A stretch of 62,506 bases of DNA, the filler included, from Klebsormidium nitens (Eukaryota > Plantae > Klebsormidiophyceae): assembly GCA_000708835.1 (NCBI GenBank). It is 4 parts of 4 records of this genome, joined end to end, with 100 filler letters (N's around TTAATTAATTAA, not from the genome) between each part and the next. Parts side by side here need not be neighbours in the genome. Positions count along the whole stretch, not along the records: positions 30,972 to 41,917 come from DF238198.1; 3 more parts are not named here. The stretch is one strand, 5' to 3'. Shown here piece after piece: positions 1-41,917 of this stretch. The translations under genes and the position numbers were made by a program. Position 1 is the first letter of the stretch. Each line of letters begins with the position of its first letter. Below the pieces are notes generated by a model. That model searched no databases and was not told the DNA's origin. It saw nothing but the letters and a program-made list of their open reading frames with translations.

Positions 1-511
1 CACATTATTTACCTCTTATCCTACGGCGTCCGGAGCCAGATCTTCGCGCGCTGCTGGCCCGGATTGTCGCCACGTGTCTGGGCGGTCGGTTGGGGGACGT
101 TTCTCAAGTGCGTGGCTGACGTCGTACTCTGCACGTCCTCTTTTTCCTCTACACGTTTGGCGTTTGGGTGTTAGAATACTCTCGAAGGAGCCCCAATCAG
201 CTTTTGCGTTTTTTGCTCCAAGCTGCTTCTCCGGACTTTCCAAGTTCTACGTCGTACGGGCGTTATGTAAAGTTGAACGGGAAGAAAGAAGAGAGGAAAG
301 ACGGAAGCAACACGTGATCCCTCTTTGCGGATTGTTTGATTGCAGACATACCGCTTCACGAAATCCCTGAGCCTTCTTTATCCATACAGCTCCTGGATTT
401 TAACCGCAGTTTTGGGCACGCTTGTCCGTTCGTTCCGACTTCGTTTGTCAAGATCAACAGGTGTAGAGTTGACATTGGCAACTCAGACGGTTTCTGCTTT
501 TGTGCATTTAG

Positions 512-2302
512 ATTGGGCATCCCAAGCTGCGCGGCCCTCTGCTTGCAAATCTGTTCGTTTGAAACGCTGATAATCATGGCGGGCTGGCTCTCGGTGAGTT
601 TTGGGCTAATCTCCGCTTTGCATCTCCTGATTCTTAGGAAGGCTCGACTTGTGCACCTCCGGTGCAAGGGAAGCTGACATGGCCAGAGTTTTCAGGCAGG
701 AGTTGTGGCTCCCGGGTTCGTCTCTTCGAGATGCTAAACGATTCGAACGTCTTTGATATCTCGCGAGCTCAGTCTTGAAATAGTACGGAAAGAAACAGCA
801 TCATTAAAGAGTGGCTCAATATCGGCCTACTCAGTTTCTTGCGAACTCATCTCATAGCCGGTTATACAGAGGTCTGCTTGGGGGCGGGGCTGTCTTTAGG
901 CTGTCGCAACAACTCGAAGATTGCCCTCCTTTCTCGGCACACTGGCTGCGTCAGATATTTACAACTGATCTCTAATCTAAAAGCTATTGCGTGTCGATGC
1001 AGAATCCGGCGTACAGCATCGGTGCCCTTTCCATCTGCTTCAACCTGAACGCTTCACTGTCCGGTGTCACATTTGGCGTTGCAACCGCATCCAGGTATGA
1101 AGACGCACTCACACTGCCTATCCGTCGAGCCTGCTGTGGCAGTTCCGTTATATTACCGGACCAGGTTTTGGCATACGAGGTCATTCGTTTGTATAGTTGC
1201 ATGATCGGGCCGTCTTTCGGTGATGACAGGAAGATTCCGCTTCCAGATCCACCTGGTTAACGGACGTTGACCAACTTTTAAGAAGACGGTCTTGCTGAAG
1301 GTGCATCTAACCAGTGGCTAACGAGGCTTGCATGATTAAGACTACAGTCTCGGAATCAAATCGGCATCACTTGCTCCAACACCAGATTCCTCTTTTCTAT
1401 TCCGAACCCAGCACCGGAGACAGTTCTTCAAGCTCAGCCCCGCTTGTAGAGATATTTTATTGCTTCGACCGCTTGAGGGAGGCCCACATTCGTGGATCAG
1501 AAGCGGAGGAGTTACGGTCTAACCCACCCGCTTCGTCTCTTGCCTTTTGCAGTACGCGGATCGCGGTAGCCCTGGGTGCAAACAAGCCCCACGTTGCACG
1601 AGCCGCTTCCAAGGCCTTCATCGCGGTCGGCGTCGCTTTAGGCGCCGCCATCGCGGCCGCGCTCGCGGCCTTCCGGCGCCACTTCATTGCGGCGCTCACC
1701 TCCGAGCCCGAGACCGCCTGCCTCGCGGCGCAGGTGATTTCTCTTCAATCTTATGATAGTAAGCTCTACGTATAGTAATCTCTAGGTATAGTAAGCTCCT
1801 AGCCTAAGAGTAAAAGCATCACCTGCTCCGCACCCGTACCCACCCTAAACCCACAAACGTTAACCAACCCCACCCGTCCCAGGCTGCTTGGCTTACTTTA
1901 ACTAAAGCTTACTTCACCTAACTCGAAGTCTTTATACGCAGGTCCTGCTCGTCCTGGCCGGGTAATCGCTCCTGGACAGCCCGCAGGAAATCGCGCAGGG
2001 GATTCTGCGCGGGAGCGCGCGGCCGCACTTCGTGTTCCTCATCGTTGATCACGCAATACCCGCTGGGGATCGCGGCGTCGGGCGCGCTGGGGGGCCTGGG
2101 TGTCTGCGGGCTGTGGCTGGGGATGGTCATCGCTGACGTGGCGGCGCAGCTGACGTCCGAGGTGACCCTGGTGTGGAAGACGGACTGGGAGGACCTGGCC
2201 GCGAAAGTGCGCGCCCGTACAGCCGCTTCGAAGGGAGCGCCGCCAAGATTAGAAGGGGTTGAGGACTCTGAAAAGGGACTCGGACGCCCCCTGCTGAGCT
2301 AG
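512..2302 (+). pseudogene. MATE/DTX-family efflux transporter, 3' half, disabled (exons 512-593, 1003-1094, 1553-1733, 1942-2302)
   Basis: GT-AG exons join in phase to LGIPSCAALCLQICSFETLIIMAGWLS|NPAYSIGALSICFNLN...GVATAS|STRIAVALGANKPHVAR...LAAQ|VLLVLAG*SLLDSPQEIAQGILRG...GLWLGM...WKTDWEDLAAKVR. This follows the plant MATE C-terminal half (AIPS..CLEWW.FE, LSICLN, STRVSNELGAG, GLW.G, T.W...A.K). There is an in-frame TAA at 1963-1965 and a frameshift near 2041-2045. 5' exons were not resolved. Confidence 0.8.
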
Positions 2303-3437
2303 TCAGTCGAAAGCGACGAAGGGAACCAAAAGGTTGTGTAAATTACAAGCACTTTGTCCACCCACACCGGAATAAGACCTTCATCCTCATCCGCACTGGA
2401 CACGCACTGGAATGGGACCTTCATCCGGCAAGTCCGAGCTCAGTGGTATTTGAATTATTCTAAGGCCCGGGAGTTGTCAGGCGCTGTTTGAAGCACTTGT
2501 GTAGCGGATCTCAGAGTACGTGCAGTCGGAAGTCTCGCAAAATAGTTATGGCTCGACTTTCATAAAAAGAAAGTGTCGGAGGTTCGTCCAAGAAAAATGT
2601 CCATTGGAGCTAGGCCGCATCAGACAGCGTTTCAGTCGCTCAGATCTAACCGGCAACAGTTGGAGCCCAAGAAAGTACCCGTAGTAAGGCTCTCGAGTCG
2701 TCAAAACTGCCAATACCGGAACACAGTAACGGGGTCGTGACTGCGACAGAAATCTGCTAAAACAACGCTGATGCTTGGATATAGAAGCCCCTGCCGGCCG
2801 CGGGCTGCCTAATTAGAGTCCGCATCCCACAGGCGATCTGTGTGTACAAAGCTTTTGAAGCCATTTTGTTAGGTCGCGGACGCGCAGTCTTGATACAGAA
2901 TTGAGCTCAGCATGCAGACTGTATAGGAGGTGCGGCATGCCAGCATACGAAGCTGGTTACCGACGCCAGTAAGATGATACACTGATCATTCGAAAGGTCA
3001 TGCATGATATATGCAAATCTTTGAATCTGGATTCGAACCGCTACTCATGGAACGCCAAGCTGTATCTGCCCGCATGCAAAATAAAGGTCTTCCAGGAATG
3101 CTTTTATTGAACCGTTCCTCCTTTACATCGTGATATCCGCGTAACAGCACTCCGCTGACATTCCACACCTACTGTCATGCGGTTTCCTTTCAGCAAGCCT
3201 TGCGCTCACCTTCCGGACGGCCGCAGGACGACGGCTCTTCAAGCCGGGCTTCGACGTCCTGCTTAAGGACTTTCCAACCCGGCCTACTAAAACCTGCGAA
3301 TACCAAAACAAATTTACCACGAGAATGTCGCCTAGAATGTTTGGACAGCTGATACGTACTCTGACTCACGCCACAAAGAAGCCCTGAATCATGGGCAGCA
3401 GACCTCCTGACTGTCATTTGACAATCTCGCTGCGCAG

Positions 3438-3716
3438 GTCCCGTTCGCGCTGTATCACCTGATCGCGATCCTCACAACGTCCTTCCTCTTCGTGATGGCG
3501 TACCAGTTCGTCTTCGTTGCCGGCTACCTAGGATGCGTGCCGGTTTTGCTACCGACGCTGGGATTCCAAAGCCTGCGCGAGCTCGCCAACGTGCTCGCGG
3601 ATCCGCTGGGCAATGACGACACCGACATCCCTGTGTTTGACTATGTCCTGGAGTGGCACACCACCATGGAAAGCATGATCAACCTGCCCAGGGAGAAGGA
3701 GTCAGTCAGCCCGTAA
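3438..3716 (+). CDS. Bestrophin/UPF0187-family anion channel, C-terminal exon only (fragment)
   Basis: After the acceptor ctgcgcag (AG 3436-3437) the frame reads VPFALYHLIAIL...SLRELANVLADPLGNDDTDIP. This matches the P-F-x-Y and (E/D)-P-F-G-x-D-x-x-D-L-P motifs of bestrophins. A possible upstream remnant SLALTFRT lies near 3194. Confidence 0.65.
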   Translation, partial: VPFALYHLIAILTTSFLFVMAYQFVFVAGYLGCVPVLLPTLGFQSLRELANVLADPLGNDDTDIPVFDYVLEWHTTMESMINLPREKESVSP

Positions 3717-6700
3717 GCCTCGGTTCGAGGAAAGTCAGAAAGAGAAGAACAAGTTTGCTAGAAATGTCGGCAAACGAAGTGACGAATTCAGACACGCAAG
3801 TACAGCTATGACGCTGATTCTCTTTACAGTGATTATATCAGATTCTCAGATATTGAACGCAACTTGTTGATCGGGTCCGGGAAAAACTTGGAGTGATCCA
3901 TGCCCTGCACGCTTCTTTTATTTCTCGGCTGACCAGGATCACTCAGCGATAGCCGAAGCACCTTCAGTCCCGCTTTGCACTAACCGGCCGTGAAACCGTG
4001 CCTTTGAGTCCCGTGACTGGTCCGTCTGCGGAGCTCTGGCTTTCTCTGCAGTATCCGATGCACCGTTCGAAGCGTGACTGGAGGGCTCCGGGCAATTGCG
4101 CGCGCGTTCTTGATATGCATTGTGTACAGAGGGCACGTCTCAGGGGCGTCTCAATTTCAAGGTCTCAGGTTTGTTTTGAGAGAGCTGCCTCTGTAAGGCG
4201 GCTCTGTCCTGTCAAAGGGTATTCGCAAGGATCAAAACTTAGTAGTTACGCCAAGAACGTCAAATCGTTGAGTGAAACATTCAAAGCTAGTCCCCATGAG
4301 ACTTCCGTGTGAGTCCAAGCCCAAGTCCGTTTGTCTTACTTCCGTTTGCCGTGCACAAACTCGGCTGTCCAATCTTGCCGGCCCGTCTTAGAGACCGACC
4401 GTTGGCCTTCAATAAGCTCCAAAATCAGCTTCACTTACTTGGGCCGTCCGATGTTGTCCCCCAAGATTCTGCTAAGCGAGCTGGACGGCCGATTTTAAGG
4501 CGCATAAATTGACCTGTTCCGCCTGGTATGTCCTTCGTGTCCGTGATTAGCATGTTAGCCTGTTCGGGCTTTAAAAGCCTCTTCGGGCTGTCTGTGGCCA
4601 GTTTTTGTCGAGCGAATATTCAAGTCTCGGCATTTTGGGTTGGGATCCACTTAACCGAGGGGGCCACGCCTTTGCTCAAGGCTCCCGCTTATCGGCAGTC
4701 CGGGTTGATCCAGGGCTCGCGTTTTGGCCGGTGATCCTGCTTCCGAGCTGCTGGTCATCTCTGATGCGTTTCAATTCTGCGTGCAGCCAGTCAGGTAGTC
4801 AGAAACGGGAGCTACTGGAAGCCGCTCGTGATTGTAAGACAGTGAAGATTCTCTAGTGCTTCGGATTTGAGTGCTCGCTTCAATGCATTTTTTCTCGGGC
4901 CGAACTGTCGGACTGTTTTTGCTGGAAGCATTCCAGCAAGGCCTTTCTTCGCGTTGGCATCTCACTTTCCAGATTCAAAGAATCCCAGAGAATCCTGGCG
5001 CCTCGACCTTTAATTCGCTCTCTGGTATATCGGTTGGATAGGGCTTCGGCTTCCTCAACAAGTATCGTACAAGTCCCGGCTTTCTCCCGTTGCTCCTTTC
5101 GTTCCGATGGCTCTGAACCGCTGGCGAAACAAGTGACATCTTGGCAAGAATTATTATCGTTCCATTTCCTAGTATCAGAGTGACTCCTGTCCACATTGAT
5201 CGAATCGAATGGCTTGAAAACTTTGCTATCTGCTCCTCCGACCAGGGGTCTTCCGTCTTTCCTGTCGGCTGCCCTTACGGTTTGTTCCGCTTCTCAGTTT
5301 CAAACAGCATTGCGACCGGCTTGGCACTATGAAACATGAGCGACTAATTCGTCCTGCTCATCTTTTCCCCTCATCTAGTGGTCTCGGGATGCCTGGTTGG
5401 GAATCAACGGCTGAAAGCCTTGTACTCGAATCCTTTATGGGCATGCGACTGAAATCATGGGAAGCGCTGCTTTGCTTGCTCGTTTACAACATTCGTGCTG
5501 CAAGTTTCAGAAGACCTGTTGGCAGTTTATGGGCGAACGTGGTCACTTTGGCAGCTTCCAAGAGTCTTTCGGTTTGAGCCGTCATCGAGGCTGTATTCAT
5601 TTGGATGCTGTGGCCAAAGCACTAGTACGCAGGATCTTAAAACAAGGTGAAGAAAGGCTGGCCCCCGTTACTTCAGCTCAGCTTTTTTTCCGTTACCTTT
5701 CAAGGTTTAAGTACCATTCCAGGGCGGTTTCGAGACCGCAAGCAATGTCGTCCGTCTATACTGGTGATCACTGGAGTCACCACCGTGCGTGCATCTTGAC
5801 GAGGCGTGAAAGCTGCCCCGCCACGCTCAGTTGCCCCTTCTCTTCAGGCGTGCCACCGAGAAAGGCACTAGAACTCAATGGTGTTGTAAAAACCTTCTCG
5901 GCTCATGTGTTGTCTCAGCTAGATTAGAGATTATGTATCGGTGAGCAGGAACCTTATAGCACACTGTTATGTCCGGCGCCTCGAATGCCCGCTGCTGATC
6001 AAGTCCATCATGTAGGGTCCATCCGCTCTGAGGGCCCTGTATACACATATTACCAATTAGACAGCTCGTGAGGGCTCGAACAGTGATTCAGGCAGTAGGA
6101 TTCTGGCCGACGGCTGGCCAGCGCCGCCGCGAAACCGTCGCTGCGATGACACCGGCGAATGCGGACAGCTCAATGTGAAAAAGATGAGGATAAAGGTGTA
6201 ACATTCACATGCCCTGTGCAACGCTATCTCGATAATTCGAAGGCAAATAGTGAACCCATAGTGACGTTGACTTCGCTCAGTAGAGTTGCGCTCTTCCATG
6301 ACGTGGGCCACACGCGACTAGCATACTACCTGGTTCCCGCCAGCCATGGTCACTTTGCAACCGGCTTTGCAAACCGTCCCGTAAACGACACAATCGTTGA
6401 TACGCGGGGCCCGGCAGCCCAGCCTCCTCCAAAGGCTGAGCAAAGGCTGATTCCGAGTCGCACCGTGATCGGACGATGAGATTGCCCTGAGATCGGCGGC
6501 CTGACTGCCAGACACAAGCCGCCGCAAGGTCGACCGCGGCCGCCGACCGCGCTTGGGTGCGGCCGCGCGAGCGGCGCGAAACGATCAGTGCCATGGACTC
6601 GATACCTACCTAGTTGCATGAGGCAAGTGGTTAGCCTAACCATTGAACTTTTTGCAGTGAAACCGGGCTCTCTCGCAGTGGTTCGAAGGACGGTTATCGG

Positions 6701-30971: not shown

Positions 30972-31390
30972 TCATATTTCAAAACAGTGTGGCAGAATGG
31001 CACAGGTATTCAAAAGCATGTATCCATCATGGAAACAGAAGTGATAAGATTTGAGGTGTGGCCAGTGCAATCAGCTAAAATGAGATGCCACCGATACATC
31101 AATTACAGCAGAATGTCAACTGCAGTTACCAATCTAACTGGGACACAATTCAAGGGTCTCAGGAGCTTGAATCCTACGCTGCCACATGGTATCTATGTCC
31201 TGGCAGGCTAAGTCTGCCCAATCCCCCCCAAACAGCTGACGAGGAGGATCACTCTGCAAGCAACATGCCATGATACTCAAGCAGTGTGCAAGCCTTAAAG
31301 TTGAGGTCTTATCGGCGCGGGTGCGAATGCTTTTACCGATTGCTTATCGATAATCGGTATTCATGTGCGAACGTCGCGCAGATTAGAAAT

Positions 31391-31572
31391 TTGCGAATTC
31401 TCGACGATCGCAGTTAGTCGAGAATTACGGTTCTCTGCTAACGAGAACCTTAACCCACTTCTGCGGCTATGATAGCCGCAGACTCGCGACAGCATCTTCA
31501 TTCTGTCGCTCTGCAAGATTCGATTTCTTCACAGCGCAAGGAGGACGGCGCCTCCTTGCTTCTGCTCAAGCT
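31391..31572 (+). repeat. Split direct repeat A1
   Basis: It matches 38304-38480 except for two substitutions and a 5-nt indel. Confidence 0.95.
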
Positions 31573-31784
31573 TCGTGTATCTCCTTACGCAAAGCTGCTT
31601 TCTTCTTGTTTTTTGCTTCATCTTCAGTCACCATTAATGGCTATCTGCTTTGCCAGATCCGATCCTATAAGCCTGAGAGCTTCTAGTCACTTCGCCTTTC
31701 AGGTTTCAGCAATCTAGTTTCGAGCTTCTTCAATTCTCCTACTTTGCTGCAGTTTCTAAGCTTGCGCAAGCCTCCTGCACCATC

Positions 31785-32803
31785 TTGTTCAGCCGATCTT
31801 CAACCCATGCACGATGGCTGGACCGAAACACAATGGTGGTGCTGAGATCCGAGTCTCAGGTGTCTCTGCAGAAGATCTTGCCAAGCAAACCAGGGAAGCA
31901 AATCTACGACATGAAGCGCTTCTTTCAAAGATCTCTCAACAACTGGATCAACAAGCAACTCAGCAAGCTGCGTGACCTGGCCAAGCAAGCCGAGAAGATT
32001 GATCAGCTGCAGTCTCAACTTCAAGCCCGAGTTCTTCCGAAGAGGTCTGACAAGATCACCAATCCTGAGGTGAAGGGTCACTTCAACCCCTGGAGAAGGC
32101 GCAGGAAGTCATAGCTCAGGCCAAGTCTGTTCTCGAGGATCATCTGGACGGTTCATCCCTACTCTCTCAGTTGACCGAGGATCAGGTGGCTTCGCTGAAA
32201 AACCACTGTGATGAAGGTGAGGGAGTTATCTCAGCTCGCATGCAGTTCCTCGAAGATTGGGATTCTGAAGGTTTGGAGGTCGCCTCTGAGATGTTGAGAC
32301 TGCGAGAGGAAGCTTCTAAGGATCCGGCAGAGATTTCTTTGGTTTCCCGCGTGAAGAAGGCCCTAATTGAGAAGAGAAAGGCAGCATAAGAGACATCCAA
32401 ACCTTCGAAGGAACACAAAACCCAGCCTTTCCAAAACCTTGGTCGTGGTGGCTATGCCGGTCGTGGTCGCTCTCCCTCCCCTTCTCCTCAGGCGTGGTTC
32501 CATCCCCCTCAGCCAGTTTTGATGCCTCCCCCCATGGCTTTAGCACCCCAGGCTAGTGTGGTCTCTCCAGCGGTTTACCAGTCACAGTACTTGCCCTAGT
32601 TGCGTCGCTCTCCCTCCCCTGGCCTTCCACCCCCGATTCCCCAGACCGTTGACCCTGCTCCCCGTGGTCCTTCCGTTCCTGGTGTCCGCGGTTCTGGCAG
32701 TGCAGGCTTACAGTGTTGGTCGTGTCAGCAGTGGGGACATGTAGCGGCAGCTTGCCCTAGCACAGCGAACATAGCAGCTAATGCAAGCCGTGGTTACTTT
32801 TAG
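31785..32803 (+). pseudogene. gag-like ORF of the YR retrotransposon (frameshifted)
   Basis: Coiled-coil segment, then EGEGVISARMQFLEDWDSEGLEV (DIRS-gag-like), an RGG/Pro-rich segment and the zinc knuckle CWSCQQWGHVAAAC (32714-32755). Frameshifts lie near 32090 and 32385, with a TAG at 32597-32599. Confidence 0.75.
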
Positions 32804-34084
32804 CTGCTGTAGCATTTGCTGGTCAGATAGCAAGCACNNNNNNNNNNNNNNNNNNNNNNNNNNNNNNNNNNNNNNNNNNNNNNNNNNNNNNNNNNNNNNN
32901 NNNNNNNNNNNNNNNNNNNNNNNNNNNNNNNNNNNNNNNNNNNNNNNNNNNNNNNNNNNNNNNNNNNNNNNNNNNNNNNNNNNNNNNNNNNNNNNNNNNN
33001 NNNNNNNNNNNNNNNNNNNNNNNNNNNNNNNNNNNNNNNNNNNNNNNNNNNNNNNNNNNNNNNNNNNNNNNNNNNNNNNNNNNNNNNNNNNNNNNNNNNN
33101 NNNNNNNNNNNNNNNNNNNNNNNNNNNNNNNNNNNNNNNNNNNNNNNNNNNNNNNNNNNNNNNNNNNNNNNNNNNNNNNNNNNNNNNNNNNNNNNNNNNN
33201 NNNNNNNNNNNNNNNNNNNNNNNNNNNNNNNNNNNNNNNNNNNNNNNNNNNNNNNNNNNNNNNNNNNNNNNNNNNNNNNNNNNNNNNNNNNNNNNNNNNN
33301 NNNNNNNNNNNNNNNNNNNNNNNNNNNNNNNNNNNNNNNNNNNNNNNNNNNNNNNNNNNNNNNNNNNNNNNNNNNNNNNNNNNNNNNNNNNNNNNNNNNN
33401 NNNNNNNNNNNNNNNNNNNNNNNNNNNNNNNNNNNNNNNNNNNNNNNNNNNNNNNNNNNNNNNNNNNNNNNNNNNNNNNNNNNNNNNNNNNNNNNNNNNN
33501 NNNNNNNNNNNNNNNNNNNNNNNNNNNNNNNNNNNNNNNNNNNNNNNNNNNNNNNNNNNNNNNNNNNNNNNNNNNNNNNNNNNNNNNNNNNNNNNNNNNN
33601 NNNNNNNNTGCTGGTCAGATAGCAAGCACAGTTGGATAGCATTTTGCTAGGGTTTCCTTGCTAAGAGTCAGAGCTTCTCATATGGACCAGATGTTTGTAA
33701 CCTGCAGTGTTTACCAGACTTGATGATGAGAACTCTAATGTCCCAGTTATATATCAACACTCCTTGATGCTCTTCATTACACAACCGATCCCATTCCTGA
33801 TCCCACCGCCTTTTAATTGCATACATTCCTTCGTTTTCTTCCTATCGAGTCCTTTTCAAACTTCAATATGACCTTTCCATCATCTCTTGCTTTTGATTTC
33901 TTCATTTTGACATTCCTCTCTTCTCCCAATTGCCAGCGTCCTCTTTGATACAATTGCTTTGCCATTGTCATCTAACGTACCCTAATTCGTTGTCTCTTCT
34001 TCTGTGTTCTCTCTGCTGTACTCTTATATTGTTTCTGGTAGAGTTTTTCTAGTAGATTTTCCGATTCTTATTCCTTCTGCCAAT

Positions 34085-34640
34085 CACTGTTGGGAACGGC
34101 TGTGATTAGAATACTTGGGAGGAGGCTCTTTGTCTCCATCCCCAATGCCCATTGCTGTATGAGAATCCATGAGTCACGTTCCTTTCCATTCCGTTCCGTT
34201 CCTTTTTTCCGTTCGTTCCGTTATTTTCCTTTCCGTTCCGTTCCGTTCCGTTCAGTTCTCCCTTCATTCTCTTCCAATGTTTCAAATTTAATTCAATCTT
34301 CCACGTTGCGAACCGGCTGTGATTAACAATCCTTGGGAGCCACTTGTGTGGCTTTACATCCCAATTGCCATTGCTGTAAGAAAGCGCATGAGTCGCGTCC
34401 CTATTTAGTTCCTTTCTGTTCCCATTTCGTTCCGTTTTTCTCTTTCGTTCCGTTCAGTCCTTGTTATTACGTTCTAAGTTCTCCTTGCCACGTTGAGCAC
34501 TTCTTGTTCAGTCCGCAGTAGCTGTTCTATTCTAAGTTCTTTCATTCCTTTTTCGTTCCCTGTTCTTCCGTTCCGTTAGACTCGTCGGGTTCCGTTCCGT
34601 TTCATTCCGTTCGTTTTTGGAATTTTTCCGTTCATGTTCG
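34085..34640 (+). repeat. Diverged ~215-bp tandem duplication with (TTCCG)n-rich tracts in the gag-pol spacer
   Basis: Units start near 34085 and 34302 and share GGCTGTGATTA..TTGGGAG..CCATTGCTGTA.GA..CATGAGTC.CGT. Each is followed by TTCCGTTCCG runs. Confidence 0.75.
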
Positions 34641-34889
34641 ACGGTTTCCGTTCATTTTCATCACTATTCTTCTTGTTTATCACGTTCTTTCGAAATCTCG
34701 CGTTTTCCTTCCTTCTAACAGTTGGCTATGAGCACAGGGCCTAGCATCCCTGTCCGTTCCACGAGAGAATGCAATCTGCCAGGCGCTTCGGCGCACCTGT
34801 GAGCCCCTTTTTGCACAAAGTTGTTGTTGCATTTAACCGTTCATTGAGTTTTTAATTTTTCTGTGACGATTAGTCTTATGATTCTGCAG

Positions 34890-36919
34890 CAACCGAAGAG
34901 TCTCTTCACAAGCTGGCTGATTTAACGGAGGCGACTGAGTTTGAGGGCTTCCGCAACCCTACGACGGCAGCCTCGGACAAGTCTGCCAGTCCTCCTGCAC
35001 GAGAGCCCTACCTCCGCCATCGACTTCGTCGCCACGCCGATTTCTGGCGTTCCTTCGTTACTTCGAGCTTCGTCCTTGGCATCCTGACTGTTGGCTACAT
35101 GCTTCCTTGGATCACCAGTCCCCCTTCTGAGCCCGCTCGGTTTCCCAACCACCCTTCGGCTTTTGAGCACGCCCGCTTCGTGACCAGCCTCGCAGCTACG
35201 GGGTCTATTCAGCCAGTTTCACAGGCTCCTTTCCTCGTCAGTCCGTTGGGTGTTGTTCCAAAAGCTGAGGACAAGCTTCGCTTGATACTAGACTTGCGCT
35301 TCTTGAATTAGTTCCTCCAGGTGCCAAAGTTCAAGTACGAGTCCCTTCGCATGGTTTCGGAGCTTTGTTCCCCTAATGATTTTCTGTTCACAGTAGATCT
35401 CAAGTCAAGCTACCACCACATCGATATCTACGAGCCGCACTGGAAGTACCTCGGCTTTCAGTGGCAGGGACAGTACTACGTTTTTACACAGCTTCCGTTC
35501 GGGCTCGCTCCGGCTTGTTACGTCTTTACGATGGTGATGCGGCAGCTGACGAAGTCCTGGCGCGCCCGCGGCTATCGCCTCGTCCACTACATTGACGAAT
35601 TTTTCTTCGCCTGTCGCGATAAGGCCGAGTTCGCCCGAGTCCAGGCTTGCGTCCTTGCCGACTTAGCTGCTGCGGGTTTGGTCGTCTCTCTTGACAAGTG
35701 CCAGCTTAGCTGCAGCCATGTAGTCAAGTTTCTAGGCTTCGTCGTTGACACTCTCTTTGGACAGTTTCGCCTTACCGCTCTCCGCAAAGCTAAGCTTGCT
35801 GCTGCAATCGATTTGAGTCTTCGCGCTCCTCTAGCGGTCAAGGCAAAAGCTCTCGCTCGCATCACTGGCTTGATTACATCGCTCTCTCTAGTTACAGGTC
35901 CAATCTCTGGCCTGTTTTCTCGCTATCTTCACCGCGCCCTCGCTTCGCGCTCCTTCTGGTACAGTAAAGTAGCGCTCGATTCTGCAGCCGTCTCTGAGCT
36001 CCACTTTTGGAAGGAACATCTCCCTCGTTTCGAGAGCCGGGTTATCTGGCGAAAGCATTCTTTGCTTCGGGTCCTGTACCACGATGCTGATGGCCAGGGT
36101 TGGGGCGGCCACTTAGAAATAGGTTCTGTCCGCCACGAGGCCCACGGAGCTTGGGAAGCGCACGAGGTGCATGGCGTTGCGTCTTCCACGTGGCGCGAGC
36201 TGACTGGCCTTCTGCGTCTCTTGCGTGCCTTCCGCCCTCTTCTCAGTGACTGCTCTGTGATTGCCCGGGGAGACGCGCTCAACGTTTTCTCGATTCTTTC
36301 AAAAGGAGGTTCAGCGAAGGAGCATCTACAGACGATTTGCCTTGAGCTCTTCTCACTGTGTTCTGAACTCCGGATCGAACTTCGACCGGAGTGGCTCCCT
36401 CGCGAGGAGAACACGCGCGCGGACTACCTCAGCAAGATTCGCGATGTCGACGACTTCGGGCTTTTAGCCGAAACCTTCGCGCTTGTCTCTCGGTGCTTTG
36501 GTCCTTTTTCGGTTGACCGCTTCGCCAGCGAGCACAACGCCAAGCTACCTCGGTTCAATTCGTTCTACTGGTGTCAGGGAGCGGAAGCTGCTAATTCCTT
36601 CACCCAAGACTGGGGCAGCGATCAGATTAACTACTGCTTTCCACCTCCTGCTTTGGTCGCTCCGACCCTTCGGCATGCGCGCGCGTGCCGCGCGCGCATG
36701 ACACTCGTTGTTTTCGGCTGGCGTTCTGCTCCGTGGTGGCCGCTGTTGCAGTGCGGCAGCGTCGCTTCCGGTCGCGGTTTTGCTCCGTTCGTCTGCGGCC
36801 AGCTTCATTTTCCGGCGGGGCGTGAGGTGTTAGTTCCGGGGCGTGCTTCTCGCGACCGTTTCTTCGGCAAGGGGGTCCCAATCTCTGACGTCTTTGCCCT
36901 CAACGTCGACTTCCGCTGA
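34890..36919 (+). pseudogene. pol: reverse transcriptase, RNase H and methyltransferase-like (MT) domain
   Basis: One frame reads LRRHADFW...GYMLPW...SPLGVVPK..KLRLILDLRFLN*FLQVPKFKYE, DLKSSYHHI, LPFGL, YIDE (35588-35599; consensus YxDD), RNase H YHDADGQGWGG...WRELTG and MT-like DRFASEHNAKLPRF...QDW...YCFPP. There is a premature TAG at 35309-35311. Confidence 0.92.
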
Positions 36920-36989
36920 CAGGTAATTCGATCTTTCTTCTTTCTTGCGAACTTCTCCCCTTTCCTTAGACTTTTACTCTATCTCGCAG

Positions 36990-38061
36990 ATTGGTTCAAT
37001 TTCGACAGCTGGAAGCTGGATGCCGCGGGTCTCCCTGCAGTCGACTCCAAGATCCGCGACCTGTCATCTGATCTTCACGACGCCGCTCTGCTCTGTCGCG
37101 CTGCGTCAACTTTGAACGGACTTACGCTGGCCCTTGGAAGAAGTTCAAGGAGTGGTGCTCTGAAAAAGGCGTCTCGGTCCTGCCGGCGCAGCCACTCACC
37201 GTAGCTCTGTACATGATGCGTCTCCTTCGGACTGCCAAAACTCCCTCCCCGTTGCTGACGTTTTTCGGCGCCGTTTACTTGAACCACTCCATGGCCGGCC
37301 TCTCCTCCCCCACAAATCATCCAGTCGTCCAGATGGCGCGCGAGGTCGCCCGCCGTCTCAAGCTTGCTGGCCTGAACCAGAAACGACCTTTTCTTGCATC
37401 GCAAATCCGTCGCCTTTTTGAGCTTTGGGGCGGTCCGTCTGCGAATCTCCATCAACTCATGAAGCTTACTAGCATTACCCTTTGCTTCACGTCCTTTCTC
37501 CGCTATGACGACCTCGCAGCAATCCAGTGGCAGCATATCAAGTTCTTCCCCAAGTCTCACATGGAGCTGTTCATCCCCGATAGCAAGACTGACCAGTACC
37601 GCCACGGGGACTCTGTTTTTGTGGCGTGCTTGGGCGGACCTTACTGCCCGGTAGCTCTCGTCCAGCGTCTTCTTCAGACCGGCCGCTACAGCGTCTTCGG
37701 TCCTGGCCCGCTCATCCGTTCGACGCTCATCTGCCCCCCCGAGCAGCGCCTCAAGTCTTCTGCCCCTTGCTACTCTACCGTCAATGCTTGGTTTAAGGAG
37801 AACGCGTCACTGCTTGGACTCGAGCCAAAATTTTACGGCACTCACTCTGGCCGACGCGGCGGCGCAACCGGCGCGGCCGCGAACGATGTTCCTGACCGCC
37901 TGTTCAAGGGGCACGGCCGCTGGCGCTCTGAGCGCGCGAAAGACGGTTACGTAAAAGAGAAGCTTCAGGCTAAGCTTGCTGTAACCCGCAACCTCGGCCT
38001 GCAAGAAGACATTCCCATTGCACAATTGCGCGCATTCGAACGCGAGGCGCGGCTGATTTAG
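36990..38061 (+). pseudogene. Tyrosine recombinase (YR) of the retrotransposon; one frameshift near 37121
   Basis: The N-terminus RAASTLNG/YAGPWKKFKEWC is split over two frames. The catalytic set is FLRYDDL (R), SKTDQ (K), HSGRRGGAT (HxxR), HGRW and DGYV (Y). Confidence 0.92.
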
Positions 38062-38180
38062 CAACGGTACGTGTTTCGTTCGACTTGTTCTGTTCTTCAC
38101 TTTCTTTTCGTTTCTTTTCCCTTATCATCTTTCTTTACGCTCGCAGTAATCTTCTCTTCCCCTCTCTTTCCTGCTTCTGT

Positions 38181-38281
38181 GTTCTGTGAAGCCCTTGCAC
38201 GAGCCCACTTGCCAACTCTCGTGCCACTTCACTTGCTCATTTCATACAGCAGTGCACTTCGTGCACTGCCATTACATTCGC
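38181..38281 (+). repeat. Split direct repeat B1
   Basis: It is identical to 39017-39117 except at one base. Confidence 0.95.
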
Positions 38282-38303
38282 GAGTTCTCGCAATAGCAGA
38301 GAA

Positions 38304-38480
38304 TTGCGAATTCTCGACGATCGCAGTTAGTCGAGAATTACGGTTCTCTGCTAACGAGAACCTTAACCCACTTCTGCGGCTATGATAGCCGCAGACTAGC
38401 GACAGCATCTTCATTCTGTCGCTCTGCAAGATTTCTTCACAGCGCAAGGAGGACGGCGCCTTCTTGCTTCTGCTCAAGCT
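38304..38480 (+). repeat. Split direct repeat A2
   Basis: Copy of 31391-31572. Confidence 0.95.
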
Positions 38481-39016
38481 CCCACCCCGCGGCCGTCGGC
38501 CGCTCCCACCCTTTTCCTTTCTTTCCGCTTCCGCTTGTTTCTCCCTGCTCTCTTGATCTCTTTCCGGCCCTGCGATTCCGCTGTTCCGTTCCGTTCCGTT
38601 CTCGCGCGGGCGACCTCGTTGGCCGTCTCTGTATTTTTTCCTTTTTCATGCTGCACGGACTTCGATCGAGCACCCTCTGGCGGCGGCCCTTCTGCTCATC
38701 TATGGAACCACCGGCGCATCTTCTTCGACACGTCCCGGGGGGCTCCCTCTACCTCCGCCGCTGGGATCGCTGGCGGGCGGGCGCGCGCTGTTTACGGTTT
38801 AGCCATAGCTGTTCGTTTGCGGGTTAGCTTCGCCGCATCGTTGCGTTTCAGGCTAGTTGGCAGTTGATAGTTGTCCTTGTTGGGTAGCGCAATGTGCATA
38901 CAATCTAGGATTTGATCAGCAATCTAGATACAGTTCTTGCACATACAACTTGGTCCGCGTCGGCATTAATATCCATTGCCGGCTCAGGCCTAACAGGCGC
39001 TACCTCCGACGGGGAC

Positions 39017-39117
39017 GTTCTGTGAAGCCCTTGCACGAGCCCACTTGCCAACTCTCGTGCCACTTCATTTGCTCATTTCATACAGCAGTGCACTTCGTGC
39101 ACTGCCATTACATTCGC
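39017..39117 (+). repeat. Split direct repeat B2 (truncated by N gap)
   Basis: Copy of 38181-38281. Confidence 0.93.
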
Positions 39118-40255
39118 AANNNNNNNNNNNNNNNNNNNNNNNNNNNNNNNNNNNNNNNNNNNNNNNNNNNNNNNNNNNNNNNNNNNNNNNNNNNNNNNNN
39201 NNNNNNNNNNNNNNNNNNNNNNNNNNNNNNNNNNNNNNNNNNNNNNNNNNNNNNNNNNNNNNNNNNNNNNNNNNNNNNNNNNNNNNNNNNNNNNNNNNNN
39301 NNNNNNNNNNNNNNNNNNNNNNNNNNNNNNNNNNNNNNNNNNNNNNNNNNNNNNNNNNNNNNNNNNNNNNNNNNNNNNNNNNNNNNNNNNNNNNNNNNNN
39401 NNNNNNNNNNNNNNNNNNNNNNNNNNNNNNNNNNNNNNNNNNNNNNNNNNNNNNNNNNNNNNNNNNNNNNNNNNNNNNNNNNNNNNNNNNNNNNNNNNNN
39501 NNNNNNNNNNNNNNNNNNNNNNNNNNNNNNNNNNNNNNNNNNNNNNNNNNNNNNNNNNNNNNNNNNNNNNNNNNNNNNNNNNNNNNNNNNNNNNNNNNNN
39601 NNNNNNNNNNNNNNNNNNNNNNNNNNNNNNNNNNNNNNNNNNNNNNNNNNNNNNNNNNNNNNNNNNNNNNNNNNNNNNNNNNNNNNNNNNNNNNNNNNNN
39701 NNNNNNNNNNNNNNNNNNNNNNNNNNNNNNNNNNNNNNNNNNNNNNNNNNNNNNNNNNNNNNNNNNNNNNNNNNNNNNNNNNNNNNNNNNNNNNNNNNNN
39801 NNNNNNNNNNNNNNNNNNNNNNNNNNNNNNNNNNNNNNNNNNNNNNNNNNNNNNNNNNNNNNNNNNNNNNNNNNNNNNNNNNNNNNNNNNNNNNNNNNNN
39901 NNNNNNACCCGNGGGTCCCAATTTGATCGGACGCTGTGGATTCCTTCGGCTCGATCGGATCGAACGGTTGCGATTGCTAGTGACATCAGAAATCGTCACC
40001 GTACCGCGGTACGTTGGTACGGTACTTTGAGACTTAGAAGGTACCGCCGAAGTTTAATGACGTCACAGAAACTTTGCGCGGTAGAGTCGCATTAGATGCA
40101 AACTGAGCCCTTCGATTGATCAGCCCCATATATCCTTGAACAAGCTTCAATCGTCGGATGGCCTGTCTCGGGTAAGATCAGGTACCCGGTGTGGCTCCAA
40201 AAGCTTGCTCTAATATCTGGAAAGGGCCAAAAAGAAACAACGAAGTAGAAATTCT

Positions 40256-40328
40256 GTGATTCGAACCCGTGACCTCGGTCCATTTGGCCAGGTCTAGGCC
40301 AGCGCGCTAGCCACCTGAGCTACGGCAA
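40256..40328 (-). mobile_element. tRNA-derived head with Pol III A and B boxes (SINE-like or tRNA pseudogene)
   Basis: The minus strand reads GCCG-TAGCTCAGGTGG (A box)...TGGCC-TAGACCT-GGCCA (anticodon-like arm)...GGTTCGAATC (B box). The acceptor and T stems do not pair. Confidence 0.6.
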
Positions 40329-41917
40329 CTCGGCCGACTCCCGATTTGGTCTAGGAAATACCGGTTTTATTAGGGATGACGGTGGAATTCCAGGGGGGTG
40401 ACCGAGTCTACGGGTGCATAGATTTTCACTCTAGCGCAACATTCCGGCAACAATTGCGCCCCAGGCAAATATTTCTTGCGATTCTGCCAACACATTTCGA
40501 TATTCAGGGGCAAAGCTTGAATTAAGACTGTGATGTGAGTGCCCGGGGCGTTACAGTCGTAACGCTTACGTGGCTGAAAAAGGAAGAAGGTCAAGTTGCT
40601 GGTTGAGGCTAGGTTGAGGAAGGCAGTCGTGCTTCCTTATCTAGCAATGGCTTCCTAACCAGGCATACTTGCTTAGAGCATCATCTTCTATGTTTGACAT
40701 CCATGGATGTAACTCCTTAGAGACATTGTCTTTAATTGCCATTATCTACATTCCTCAGCATGGAGAAGCGTCGAAAGGTCCTCTGTGCTGAGATTGCAAC
40801 AAGCACCAGACTGTGCAGGTGCTGGCGATGGTGTCCCCCATTGAGTTTACCCGTGCACCTGGTCGCCCAAGACAAACTGACACTTGCGAATGCCAGCAAA
40901 CCTTGCAAATACCATGTCCAGCACTTAGGAGTTTTCAGAGTGTCAAAAAAGTCTATGGAAGGGAAGGGGAAGCTCGGAGACCGCCGCCATGGCTGCCAGC
41001 CAGAGGCGCTCTCCCTTCTTTCCAGAACATCTCTCAGCAAGATGCTCTGAATGGACTTTTACAAGGTATGAGGGCATCCTGTTAGACCTGTTTGAGCTTG
41101 GTGAAGCTTTCTGGGATGCTGGGAGGGCAGCCATTGGGAGCATGAGCTTGCGGAAGAGCTCAAAAAGCTCCTCTGCTGAGCTTTCCCGTGCTCCCTTCCT
41201 CCTCCCTGCGGACGTCTTCCTTCTGCGGACTGGGTGTCTGATCGGCTCTTCACAGGCTTCAGTGATTTGGACGGTCCGGATTGACTTCGGAGGATCACAC
41301 CCCGAGCACTTTCATTTGCCTGAGGATCGCGGCGACCACGGCAGGTTTTGATTTATCTTATGACCGATTCTGAGGTTGCCGGGGGTCCGATTCAGCAGGC
41401 AACCCCAAAACTTGCCTACCGGATCCGGCCCTCCGCGGAATTAAAATTCGTCATCGTCATCCCTAGTTTTATACCCCGACGCCCACTTTAAAGTTGGTGG
41501 GTGCGAATCGCCCCTTAGCGCGCACGGCTCAGTGCGCGCCGGCCGGCCGCGCGGCAGGCATTCGCGGCCTAGGCGGCCGCGCAGCTGACCAAAAATGGCG
41601 GCAAGCTACCTAGTACCTTCGCTAGCTGAGGAACTTGAAGCTGGACAAGCAACGGCATTAACCCTTTGTCGGCGGGGAACTTTCGGTCAATTCTACCGTA
41701 CGTGAATTTTCGCGATAATCGCAAAAATCAAACTGACCGTCCGATCGATCGAGCGGACGGCGCCGATGAAAAATACTGACGGTCCGGCACGCCGGTCCGC
41801 GACGGTAGCAGTCAAACACTTCCGCGCAGCAAGTCCGCCTGAGGGCAATCCAGAGCCACCGGCCGCCCATATCTCGGGTTTCTATGACACGCCCGCGGGT
41901 TTCTAGCCTTACACACG

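Follow-up and report, generated by a model that had tools for sequence, protein, structure and literature searches.

PAT-like retrotransposons such as Pat1, SpPat1, Toc3 and kangaroo are members of the DIRS order that encode gag, pol (reverse transcriptase, RNase H and methyltransferase) and a tyrosine recombinase (YR), in this order, and carry split direct repeats arranged as A1..B1A2..B2. They have been described as containing three open reading frames (ORFs), which often overlap. To our knowledge, expression of the recombinase and polymerase of DIRS-order elements is essentially unstudied, and published annotations present ATG-initiated or overlapping ORFs. We analyzed a stretch of 62,506 nucleotides (nt), hereafter called the window, joined from four parts of the genome of the charophyte alga Klebsormidium nitens (assembly GCA_000708835.1). 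Positions 30972-41917 of the window are one entire scaffold of 10,946 bp (DF238198.1), which carries a single retrotransposon with the gene order and repeats of the PAT-like group. Unlike the elements described previously, its pol and YR genes have no start codons and are bounded by GT and AG dinucleotides, and its gag and pol are set apart by a spacer of 1.3-2 kb. We favor, with modest confidence, the explanation that pol and YR are alternatively spliced from a phase-1 donor within gag, in one transcription unit of three exon-like genes.

Related strategies exist in other retroelements. In avian leukosis/sarcoma virus, only a few gag codons precede the donor, and Env therefore starts with the gag AUG. 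The proposed scheme would resemble the production of retroviral env mRNA, in that a donor in or near gag pairs with an acceptor farther downstream, RNA that stays unspliced is both genome and gag(-pol) mRNA, and the spliced product has an in-frame N-terminus derived from gag. It would differ in that the product is a tyrosine recombinase (and Pol), the donor is approximately 135 codons into gag, and the element is not a long terminal repeat (LTR)/integrase retroelement. Among LTR retrotransposons, Ogre has an intron between its ORFs. Splicing in copia and BARE yields a gag-only RNA (PMC3735527). As would be true here, splicing in copia, BARE and Ogre sets the ratio of structural to enzymatic protein, and genomic copies keep the intron because they are made from unspliced RNA. 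Copia and BARE obtain more Gag by splicing pol out, whereas in the K. nitens element splicing would be needed for any Pol and YR. Penelope-like elements are described as retaining spliceosomal introns (PMC4209133). These elements are similar in that their genomic copies keep functional introns, and differ in belonging to another order (with a GIY-YIG endonuclease and a telomerase-like reverse transcriptase) and in that their introns do not link separate genes. We found no description of native introns or splicing in DIRS, PAT or Ngaro elements in the searchable literature; older key papers (Goodwin & Poulter 2001; Duncan 2002; Poulter & Butler 2015) lay outside this search, so an earlier mention is possible.

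The scaffold element is a decayed PAT-like (DIRS order) tyrosine-recombinase retrotransposon, and is in itself an ordinary new member of this group. All of its genes lie on one strand, the plus strand of the window. The gag gene (31814-32803) has an ATG at 31814, a coiled-coil N-terminal part, a CCHC knuckle (CWSCQQWGHVAAAC) at its C-terminus and a TAG stop at 32801-32803. A CCHC knuckle is likewise present in gag of Pat1-like elements (PMC4157794). The putative pol exon (34890-36922) encodes an ATG-less conserved N-terminal region, followed by reverse transcriptase, RNase H and a putative Dam-like methyltransferase, with a TGA stop at 36917-36919. The putative YR exon (36990-38061) ends with TAG at 38059-38061. 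By using HMMER, we matched gag to the gag ORFs of relatives P0286-P0298, of which P0291-P0298 also have the zinc knuckle. Pfam searches of pol detected RVT_1 at 1.5e-16; the match to the Dam family PF05869 (25.2 bits, E=1.5e-5) lies under the curated cut-off of 28.1, and relatives of pol carry a precomputed PF05869 match. A Dam-like domain after RNase H is a feature of DIRS1 and PAT elements that Ngaro and VIPER lack. A word search with pol returned 436 homologues, led by K. nitens "reverse transcriptase" proteins and DIRS-type pol ORFs. Pfam gave no match for the window's YR piece; a word search returned 177 YR homologues, many of them with precomputed PF00589 matches and named "integrase" or "Tyr recombinase domain", and the motifs HSGRRGGAT and GRWRSERAKDGY are present in the window's YR. 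One database protein, P0001 ("reverse transcriptase [Klebsormidium nitens]"), matches the scaffold at 100% identity. This copy of the element is dead. In a three-frame translation, two stops and two frame changes break gag into four pieces; an in-frame TAG interrupts pol at 35309-35311, and a run of T's at approximately 37111-37113 contains a 1-nt frameshift within YR.

The candidate 3' splice sites of pol and YR lie at their first conserved codons. The pol frame opens after a TAG at 34871-34873 and runs from 34874, and its first in-frame ATG, at 35099, is 70 codons into sequence that is conserved among relatives; another ATG, at 34878, is out of frame. The predicted acceptor is the AG at 34888-34889 (tctgcAG/CAacc, where the slash marks the proposed junction), which splits a GCA codon after its first base, that is, in phase 1. 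Similarly, YR has no ATG before its conserved residues, and its predicted acceptor, the AG at 36988-36989 (tctcgcAG/ATtgg), splits a GAT codon after the first base, also in phase 1. In a crude scan, 12 of 216 AGs had at least 15 pyrimidines among the 20 upstream positions, and neither of these two AGs was among them. Because the window's AGs are by themselves statistically unremarkable, the case for the acceptors rests on comparison with relatives.

Most close relatives (55-85% identity) are raw products of ORF callers from K. nitens, JGI, ENA and Logan contigs, and therefore reveal the in-frame residues that lie upstream of the conserved protein. In all seven pol relatives with at least 12 such residues, the upstream sequence is rich in F, L, S and P and is followed by Ala and then by A/V-x-x-E-SLHxL. 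Mean pairwise identity among these seven is 0.13 for the 12 residues upstream of the AG versus 0.66 for the 13 residues downstream, and the fraction of F, L, S and P is 0.65 upstream versus 0.37 downstream. Met residues are scattered (-16, -20, -22 and -29), two copies have a Met at differing columns inside the conserved start, and in relatives that lack one, which are frequent, the ORF caller began at GTG, TTG or a downstream Met. The YR start exhibits the same pattern in 11 relatives, with pyrimidine-coded residues followed by Ala (once Val) and then by D/E-[IVW]-F..W.L; pairwise identity is 0.12 upstream versus 0.49 downstream of the acceptor, and the F, L, S and P fraction is 0.61 versus 0.31. 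At the nucleotide level, Ala before a codon that starts with G corresponds to GCA followed by G, in the context ..YYYGCAG/ (Y, pyrimidine), as at both acceptors in the window. On this comparison, the missing ATGs are a trait of the family rather than a consequence of decay.

More distant YR ORFs (35-38% identity), which are of animal type on our reading, extend this observation. In all 16 of these ORFs, the first Asp is preceded by S, P, L, T, V or A, exactly the amino acids that have NYA codons (N, any nucleotide), and the residues farther upstream are again pyrimidine-coded. When GTDB genomes were scanned with an alignment of these distant YRs, three contigs were recovered (L037, L038 and L039). 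They were deposited within bacterial metagenome-assembled genomes (Sansalvadorimonas, Sedimenticola and Stappiaceae "chromosome 58"), and are evidently contaminating eukaryotic host DNA with complete PAT-like elements that have direct terminal repeats; the L037 contig is palindromic, with two inverted copies (235-3159 and 9187-6263). The DNA at the predicted YR acceptor reads cctttccccAG/GTgtc in L037, tatactttcAG/ACata in L038 and ctgctttttgcAG/ATgta in L039. In these three contigs and in the window, the first conserved YR codon starts with the G of the AG, in the same phase, and the synonymous position that supplies the A is conserved; the joint chance of an A-ending codon in all four DNA sequences is approximately 0.003, given the codon usage of each. 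No in-frame ATG is present between the preceding stop and the YR acceptor in L037, L038 or the window. In the three contigs, YR begins 340-1,340 nt 3' of the pol stop, and therefore the partner donor cannot sit at the end of pol. The distribution of these sites indicates that the putative YR acceptor is older than the alga.

Within gag, the best candidate for a shared 5' splice site is gaaG/GTGAGG (32214-32222), for which the exon would end at 32216 in phase 1. This site lies in the conserved gag motif DEG[KE], within gtgatgaaG/GTGAGG, and it matches eight of nine positions of the donor consensus, making it the best donor-like site in gag. The motif ..CDE-G-E.. of the window's gag aligns with ..E-G-[KERM]-x(5)-RQK.I.IADRS..GW of animal-type gags, and at the homologous Gly, L037 has agagaG/GTAAGA and L039 has gaagaaG/GTGAGA. 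Both sites are in phase 1 and are among the top-scoring phase-1 donors of those ORFs. Thus, G/GTGAG or G/GTAAG is found in three of the four elements for which DNA is available (the window, L037 and L039), and the joint chance of GGT plus a next codon that ends in G is approximately 0.008, given the codon usage of each element. The residue after the Gly has a codon that starts with a purine, as GTR (R, purine) needs, in all listed proteins of both groups. The K. nitens gene model P0003, which is ab initio, also places a donor at 32216/32217.

A second candidate, cgtG/GTTACT (32790-32803), would end the exon at 32792, in phase 1 and three codons before the gag stop. This site is weak, matching approximately five of nine consensus positions by manual count, which is under the cut-off of 6/9 used in the donor scan. 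The gag tails of relatives (NAGR-GYF, NAGR-FIS, NAGR-SIQ and NVGK-QIF, each followed by the stop) would be compatible with G/GT(A/C)(A/G)G, and the position corresponds to the gag-pol joint of relatives in which gag and pol form a single ORF. The two candidates are therefore backed differently, with homology pointing to 32792/32793, and signal strength and DNA-level conservation pointing to 32216/32217. We also considered a phase-1 donor just after the gag ATG (31859/31860, cag/GTGTCT), and rejected it because the gag N-termini of relatives show no conservation at that position.

Between gag and pol is a T-rich, apparently noncoding spacer (32804-34889) that we predict to be the first intron. 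It contains repeats and no long ORF, and its GC content is 0.40-0.47 versus 0.52-0.63 in the exons. The spacer is approximately 1.3-2 kb long and full of stops, and in relatives the in-frame residues upstream of pol show no conservation. It includes a diverged tandem duplication of approximately 160 nt (34085-34243 versus 34302-34455, 74% identical) and abundant TTCCG/TTCCGTT repeats (34166-34621), a motif that appears again at 38580-38600, after repeat A2 (see below). A run of 771 N's interrupts the sequence at 32838-33608. The 21 bases that precede this gap (32817-32837) are identical to the 21 bases that follow it (33609-33629). The gap is therefore probably an artefact of scaffolding two contigs that overlap, with nothing missing, so no sequence, donor included, need be hidden there. 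In L038 (1300-1600), gag and pol overlap, with pol in the +1 frame relative to gag and a long stretch open in both frames, an arrangement that points to frameshifting or an indel, and not to an intron, between these two genes.

An earlier note on this DNA had proposed that pol and YR open without an ATG at acceptor-like sites of equal phase, and that they could share a phase-1 donor at the end of gag, in the leader or inside the N gap. Its coordinates (the TAG, the AGs and their phases, the ATG at 35099, the TGA, the GT, the 67-nt interval and the 23 open codons) are all exact to the base. The conservation boundaries of relatives bear out the acceptor-like sites, and the lack of ATGs, for which the note had allowed decay as a cause, extends across relatives. 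As for the donor, a conserved phase-1 candidate does lie upstream; it is inside gag, at 32216/32217, and not in the leader or the gap.

The pol-YR junction has its own candidate intron (36923-36989, 67 nt; CAG/GTAATT ... tctcgcAG/AT). The pol stop is followed by CAG/GTAATT, with its GT at 36923, which matches eight of nine donor positions, and the 23 codons 3' of the TGA are open in the pol frame. Pol tails with donor signatures are present in relatives of every subfamily. Tails of the form [G/S]-[K/E], corresponding to G/GTAAG, G/GTGAG, A/GTAAG or A/GTGAG, occur in P0010, P0012, P0025, P0037 and P0249, as well as in P0241/P0242, P0246, P0245, P0247 and P0004. Others have a last codon that can end in GG (R, W or G) and an immediate stop, as in NG/GTGA or NG/GTAA (P0011, P0013, P0243, P0244 and P0017), or a GTGG variant (P0036). 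The window and three other copies of its subfamily (P0002, P0031 and P0121) have Q or K before the junction and V after it. For P0012 and P0131, which are two overlapping frames of one contig, the DNA could be reconstructed almost fully (TCTG/GTGAGTTTTTCTAAY..GCAG/AT, 37 nt). The pol-YR introns predicted in this way are approximately 33, 36, 37, 57, 62, 64, 65, 67 and 78 nt long, and those of sister copies differ by non-multiples of three, as expected of noncoding sequence. From these comparisons, the 36923-36989 interval looks like a real intron.

Removal of this intron could not fuse Pol to YR in the window's subfamily, because its donor is in phase 0 of the pol frame and its acceptor is in phase 1 of the YR frame. 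A search of this subfamily for a different YR acceptor, one in phase 0, turned up none that is conserved; a phase-1 donor within the 3' end of pol (36822, C/GTGAGG) was also considered and was rejected as inconsistent across relatives. When P0031 was used to search for pol-YR ORFs joined by splicing, only read-through ORFs and the ab initio model P0005 were recovered. In four copies of the subfamily, the spacer between pol and YR measures 62, 64, 65 or 67 nt, and pol and YR share a frame in only two of them. All relatives have donor signatures at their pol end that match the GTAATT donor and 67-nt intron of the earlier note. The note's read-through alternative, in which a Pol-YR fusion is translated directly, fits the window and P0031 but not P0002 (65 nt) or P0121 (62 nt), and so is not general. 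Within the subfamily, YR copies differ at 6-16% of columns that are invariant in outgroups versus 19-38% of variable columns, a pattern indicating that YR is under purifying selection. YR must therefore be expressed, and by a route other than the local intron, which is out of frame; the gag donor would supply one.

In the scheme that we favor, unspliced RNA would serve both as the reverse-transcription template and as the Gag mRNA, because only gag has a conserved ATG, and the introns would be kept in all genomic copies. Pol and YR would begin at the 3' splice sites 34889/34890 and 36989/36990, each between codon bases 1 and 2, which would account for their lack of start codons. A phase-1 gag donor, most probably 32216/32217 (at a Gly conserved from algae to animal-type elements) and failing that 32792/32793, would be joined alternatively to the pol or the YR acceptor, carrying the gag ATG and N-terminal part in frame and creating the junction codons G+CA (Ala) for pol and G+AT (Asp) for YR. 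Stops would lie zero to four codons inside each intron, and the choice and efficiency of splice sites would set the Gag:Pol:YR ratio. Canonical dinucleotides mark the gene borders (GT at 32217 and 36923; AG at 34888-34889 and 36988-36989). The gag donor candidates and the pol and YR acceptors are all in phase 1, as needed for an in-frame product, and the pol-end donor is in phase 0 in this subfamily, which puts that one junction out of frame. Given that the second intron runs from phase 0 to phase 1 in the window's subfamily, YR would there have to be made via the gag donor; where the counterpart of this intron runs from phase 1 to phase 1, as it does in many sister copies, its removal would extend Pol into YR. 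Relatives elsewhere encode gag-pol as a single ORF or pol-YR as a single ORF, which indicates that fusion proteins are the ancestral state. The latter arrangement is found in L001, a GC-rich PAT/DIRS-like element from a metagenome, in which one uninterrupted frame covers pol and YR, with neither a stop nor a spacer between them (3302-3900). The lack of ATGs across the family, the conservation boundaries, the phases and the conservation of GT and AG at synonymous sites are observed directly; splicing at the proposed sites and the pairing of donor with acceptors are what we infer from them.

Several observations weigh against this scheme. We know of no documented precedent in the DIRS order for a fusion of the gag N-terminus to YR. 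Both acceptors in the window have mediocre polypyrimidine tracts, and L038 lacks the gag donor motif. The conserved gag Gly could be explained by protein constraint alone. The donors of close relatives were back-inferred from ORF-caller proteins, and the introns of 33-37 nt predicted in one subfamily are very short for spliceosomal introns. Pol-end donors in relatives vary in phase (approximately 12 in phase 1, 7 in phase 2 and 4 in phase 0), and therefore an in-frame Pol-YR fusion is not universal. Finally, in-frame ATGs occur upstream of the acceptors in P0002, P0012, P0131 and P0139, and ATGs occur at the start of the conserved region in P0011 and P0118.

We considered three other explanations. 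Expression could proceed with no splicing at all, through readthrough, frameshifting into an overlapping frame, non-conserved upstream ATGs, non-AUG initiation, or reinitiation on unspliced or subgenomic RNA, with the AG and GT motifs arising as by-products of coding or of a hydrophobic N-terminal peptide. DIRS-order elements have indeed been described with overlapping ORFs (PMC3266345; PMC9210276), the pol frame of P0031, P0241, P0246 and P0249 continues directly into YR, both P0131 and P0139 carry a +1-frame ATG at the same position, and some pol ORFs have upstream in-frame ATGs. However, these upstream ATGs are not positionally conserved, approximately 1.3-2 kb of stop-filled spacer lies between gag and pol, and the frame relation between pol and YR differs among sister copies (62, 64, 65 and 67 nt). 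Moreover, variation at the residue before YR is confined to amino acids that have NYA codons, and the A-ending codon in four of four DNA sequences reflects a constraint on nucleotides rather than on protein. We consider translation from unspliced RNA unlikely on balance, while giving it more weight than either of the explanations that follow.

Another explanation retains splicing and makes it serial and essentially constitutive, so that removal of the first and second introns yields one Gag-Pol-YR polyprotein; because of the stops just inside each intron, unspliced RNA would give Gag only. The gag-end G/GT is in phase 1, three codons before the stop, and the phase-1 pol-end donors of approximately 12 relatives would be in frame with the phase-1 YR acceptor; the single-ORF gag-pol and pol-YR relatives also agree with this arrangement. 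Against it stands the pol-end donor, which is in phase 0 in the window, P0002, P0031 and P0121 and in phase 2 in approximately seven other relatives, YR being nonetheless under selection, and the gag-end donor that it would use (GTTACT) is weak, at approximately 5/9 by manual count. We regard serial splicing as rather improbable. Least probable by far is that the architecture is an artefact of decay, in which a dead copy lost its ATGs and acquired AG and GT by chance. The copy does contain stops and frameshifts, an out-of-frame ATG at 34878 and acceptors that are unremarkable within the window, but the same architecture is found in many relatives of several subfamilies, including intact pol ORFs of 677-722 amino acids and YR ORFs of 355-396 amino acids. 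The pol and YR starts of relatives thus largely refute this explanation.

The remaining features of the scaffold include its repeats. A BLASTN comparison revealed that A1, the left copy of a split direct repeat (31385-31572), is 95% identical over 188 nt to 38298-38480 (A2). B1 (38181-38297) adjoins A2, and its 38181-38281 portion is 99% identical to 39017-39117, within B2 (39017-39119), which is truncated by the second N gap. All four lie on the plus strand. No inverted repeats were found in the element by the repeat comparison, and the order A1..B1A2..B2 is therefore that of split direct repeats, as opposed to inverted terminal repeats with an internal complementary region. In the textbook form of this layout, B1, A2 and B2 are contiguous; here, 536 nt (38481-39016) separate A2 from B2. 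The layout A1..B1A2..B2 is typical of PAT-like members of the DIRS order (PMC4157794). ARAGORN with default settings and Rfam reported no RNA genes in the window. A degenerate tRNA-like sequence (GCCGTAGCTCAGGTGG...GGTTCGAATC) is present on the minus strand at 40247-40323, which ARAGORN calls as tRNA-Val(GAC) only at a relaxed threshold and which neither default ARAGORN nor Rfam reports; it may be a tRNA pseudogene or the head of a short interspersed element (SINE).

The gene models available publicly for these K. nitens elements are chimeric ab initio predictions. P0001 skips the in-frame TAG and the YR frameshift via invented introns, P0003 fuses the gag N-terminus to the middle of pol, and P0005, named "DNA adenine methyltransferase", fuses pol to YR. 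We rejected these three models as evidence of splicing, because they are ab initio and bridge stops and frameshifts. In one animal-type subfamily (L039 at 5288-5350, P0048, P0057, P0059, P0063 and others), pol extends approximately 30 residues beyond its usual ..DF end, with a Cys-rich tail (..GFC..x..C..C..W). A metagenome scan for DNA of relatives found only relatives at no more than 37% identity, and two scans of viral contigs for relatives found nothing.

We also put forward, more tentatively than the proposal for the K. nitens element itself, that PAT-like elements from a charophyte alga to the marine-animal type have in common an ancient 5' splice site within gag, together with a 3' splice site at the first YR codon, each of them in phase 1. 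The whole group might then make YR, and in Klebsormidium also the polymerase, from a retrovirus-style spliced subgenomic mRNA that borrows the gag start. If true, this shared scheme would explain why ORFs of these elements often have no ATG or seemingly "overlap". The donor-acceptor pair, if conserved from alga-type to animal-type elements, would rank among the most ancient introns known to be conserved in mobile elements. If expression depends on alternative splicing from a gag donor, pipelines that assume intronless retrotransposon genes mis-call these elements, and the Gag:Pol:YR ratio would be under the control of the host spliceosome, a control point as in retroviruses, reached in a different order of retroelements.

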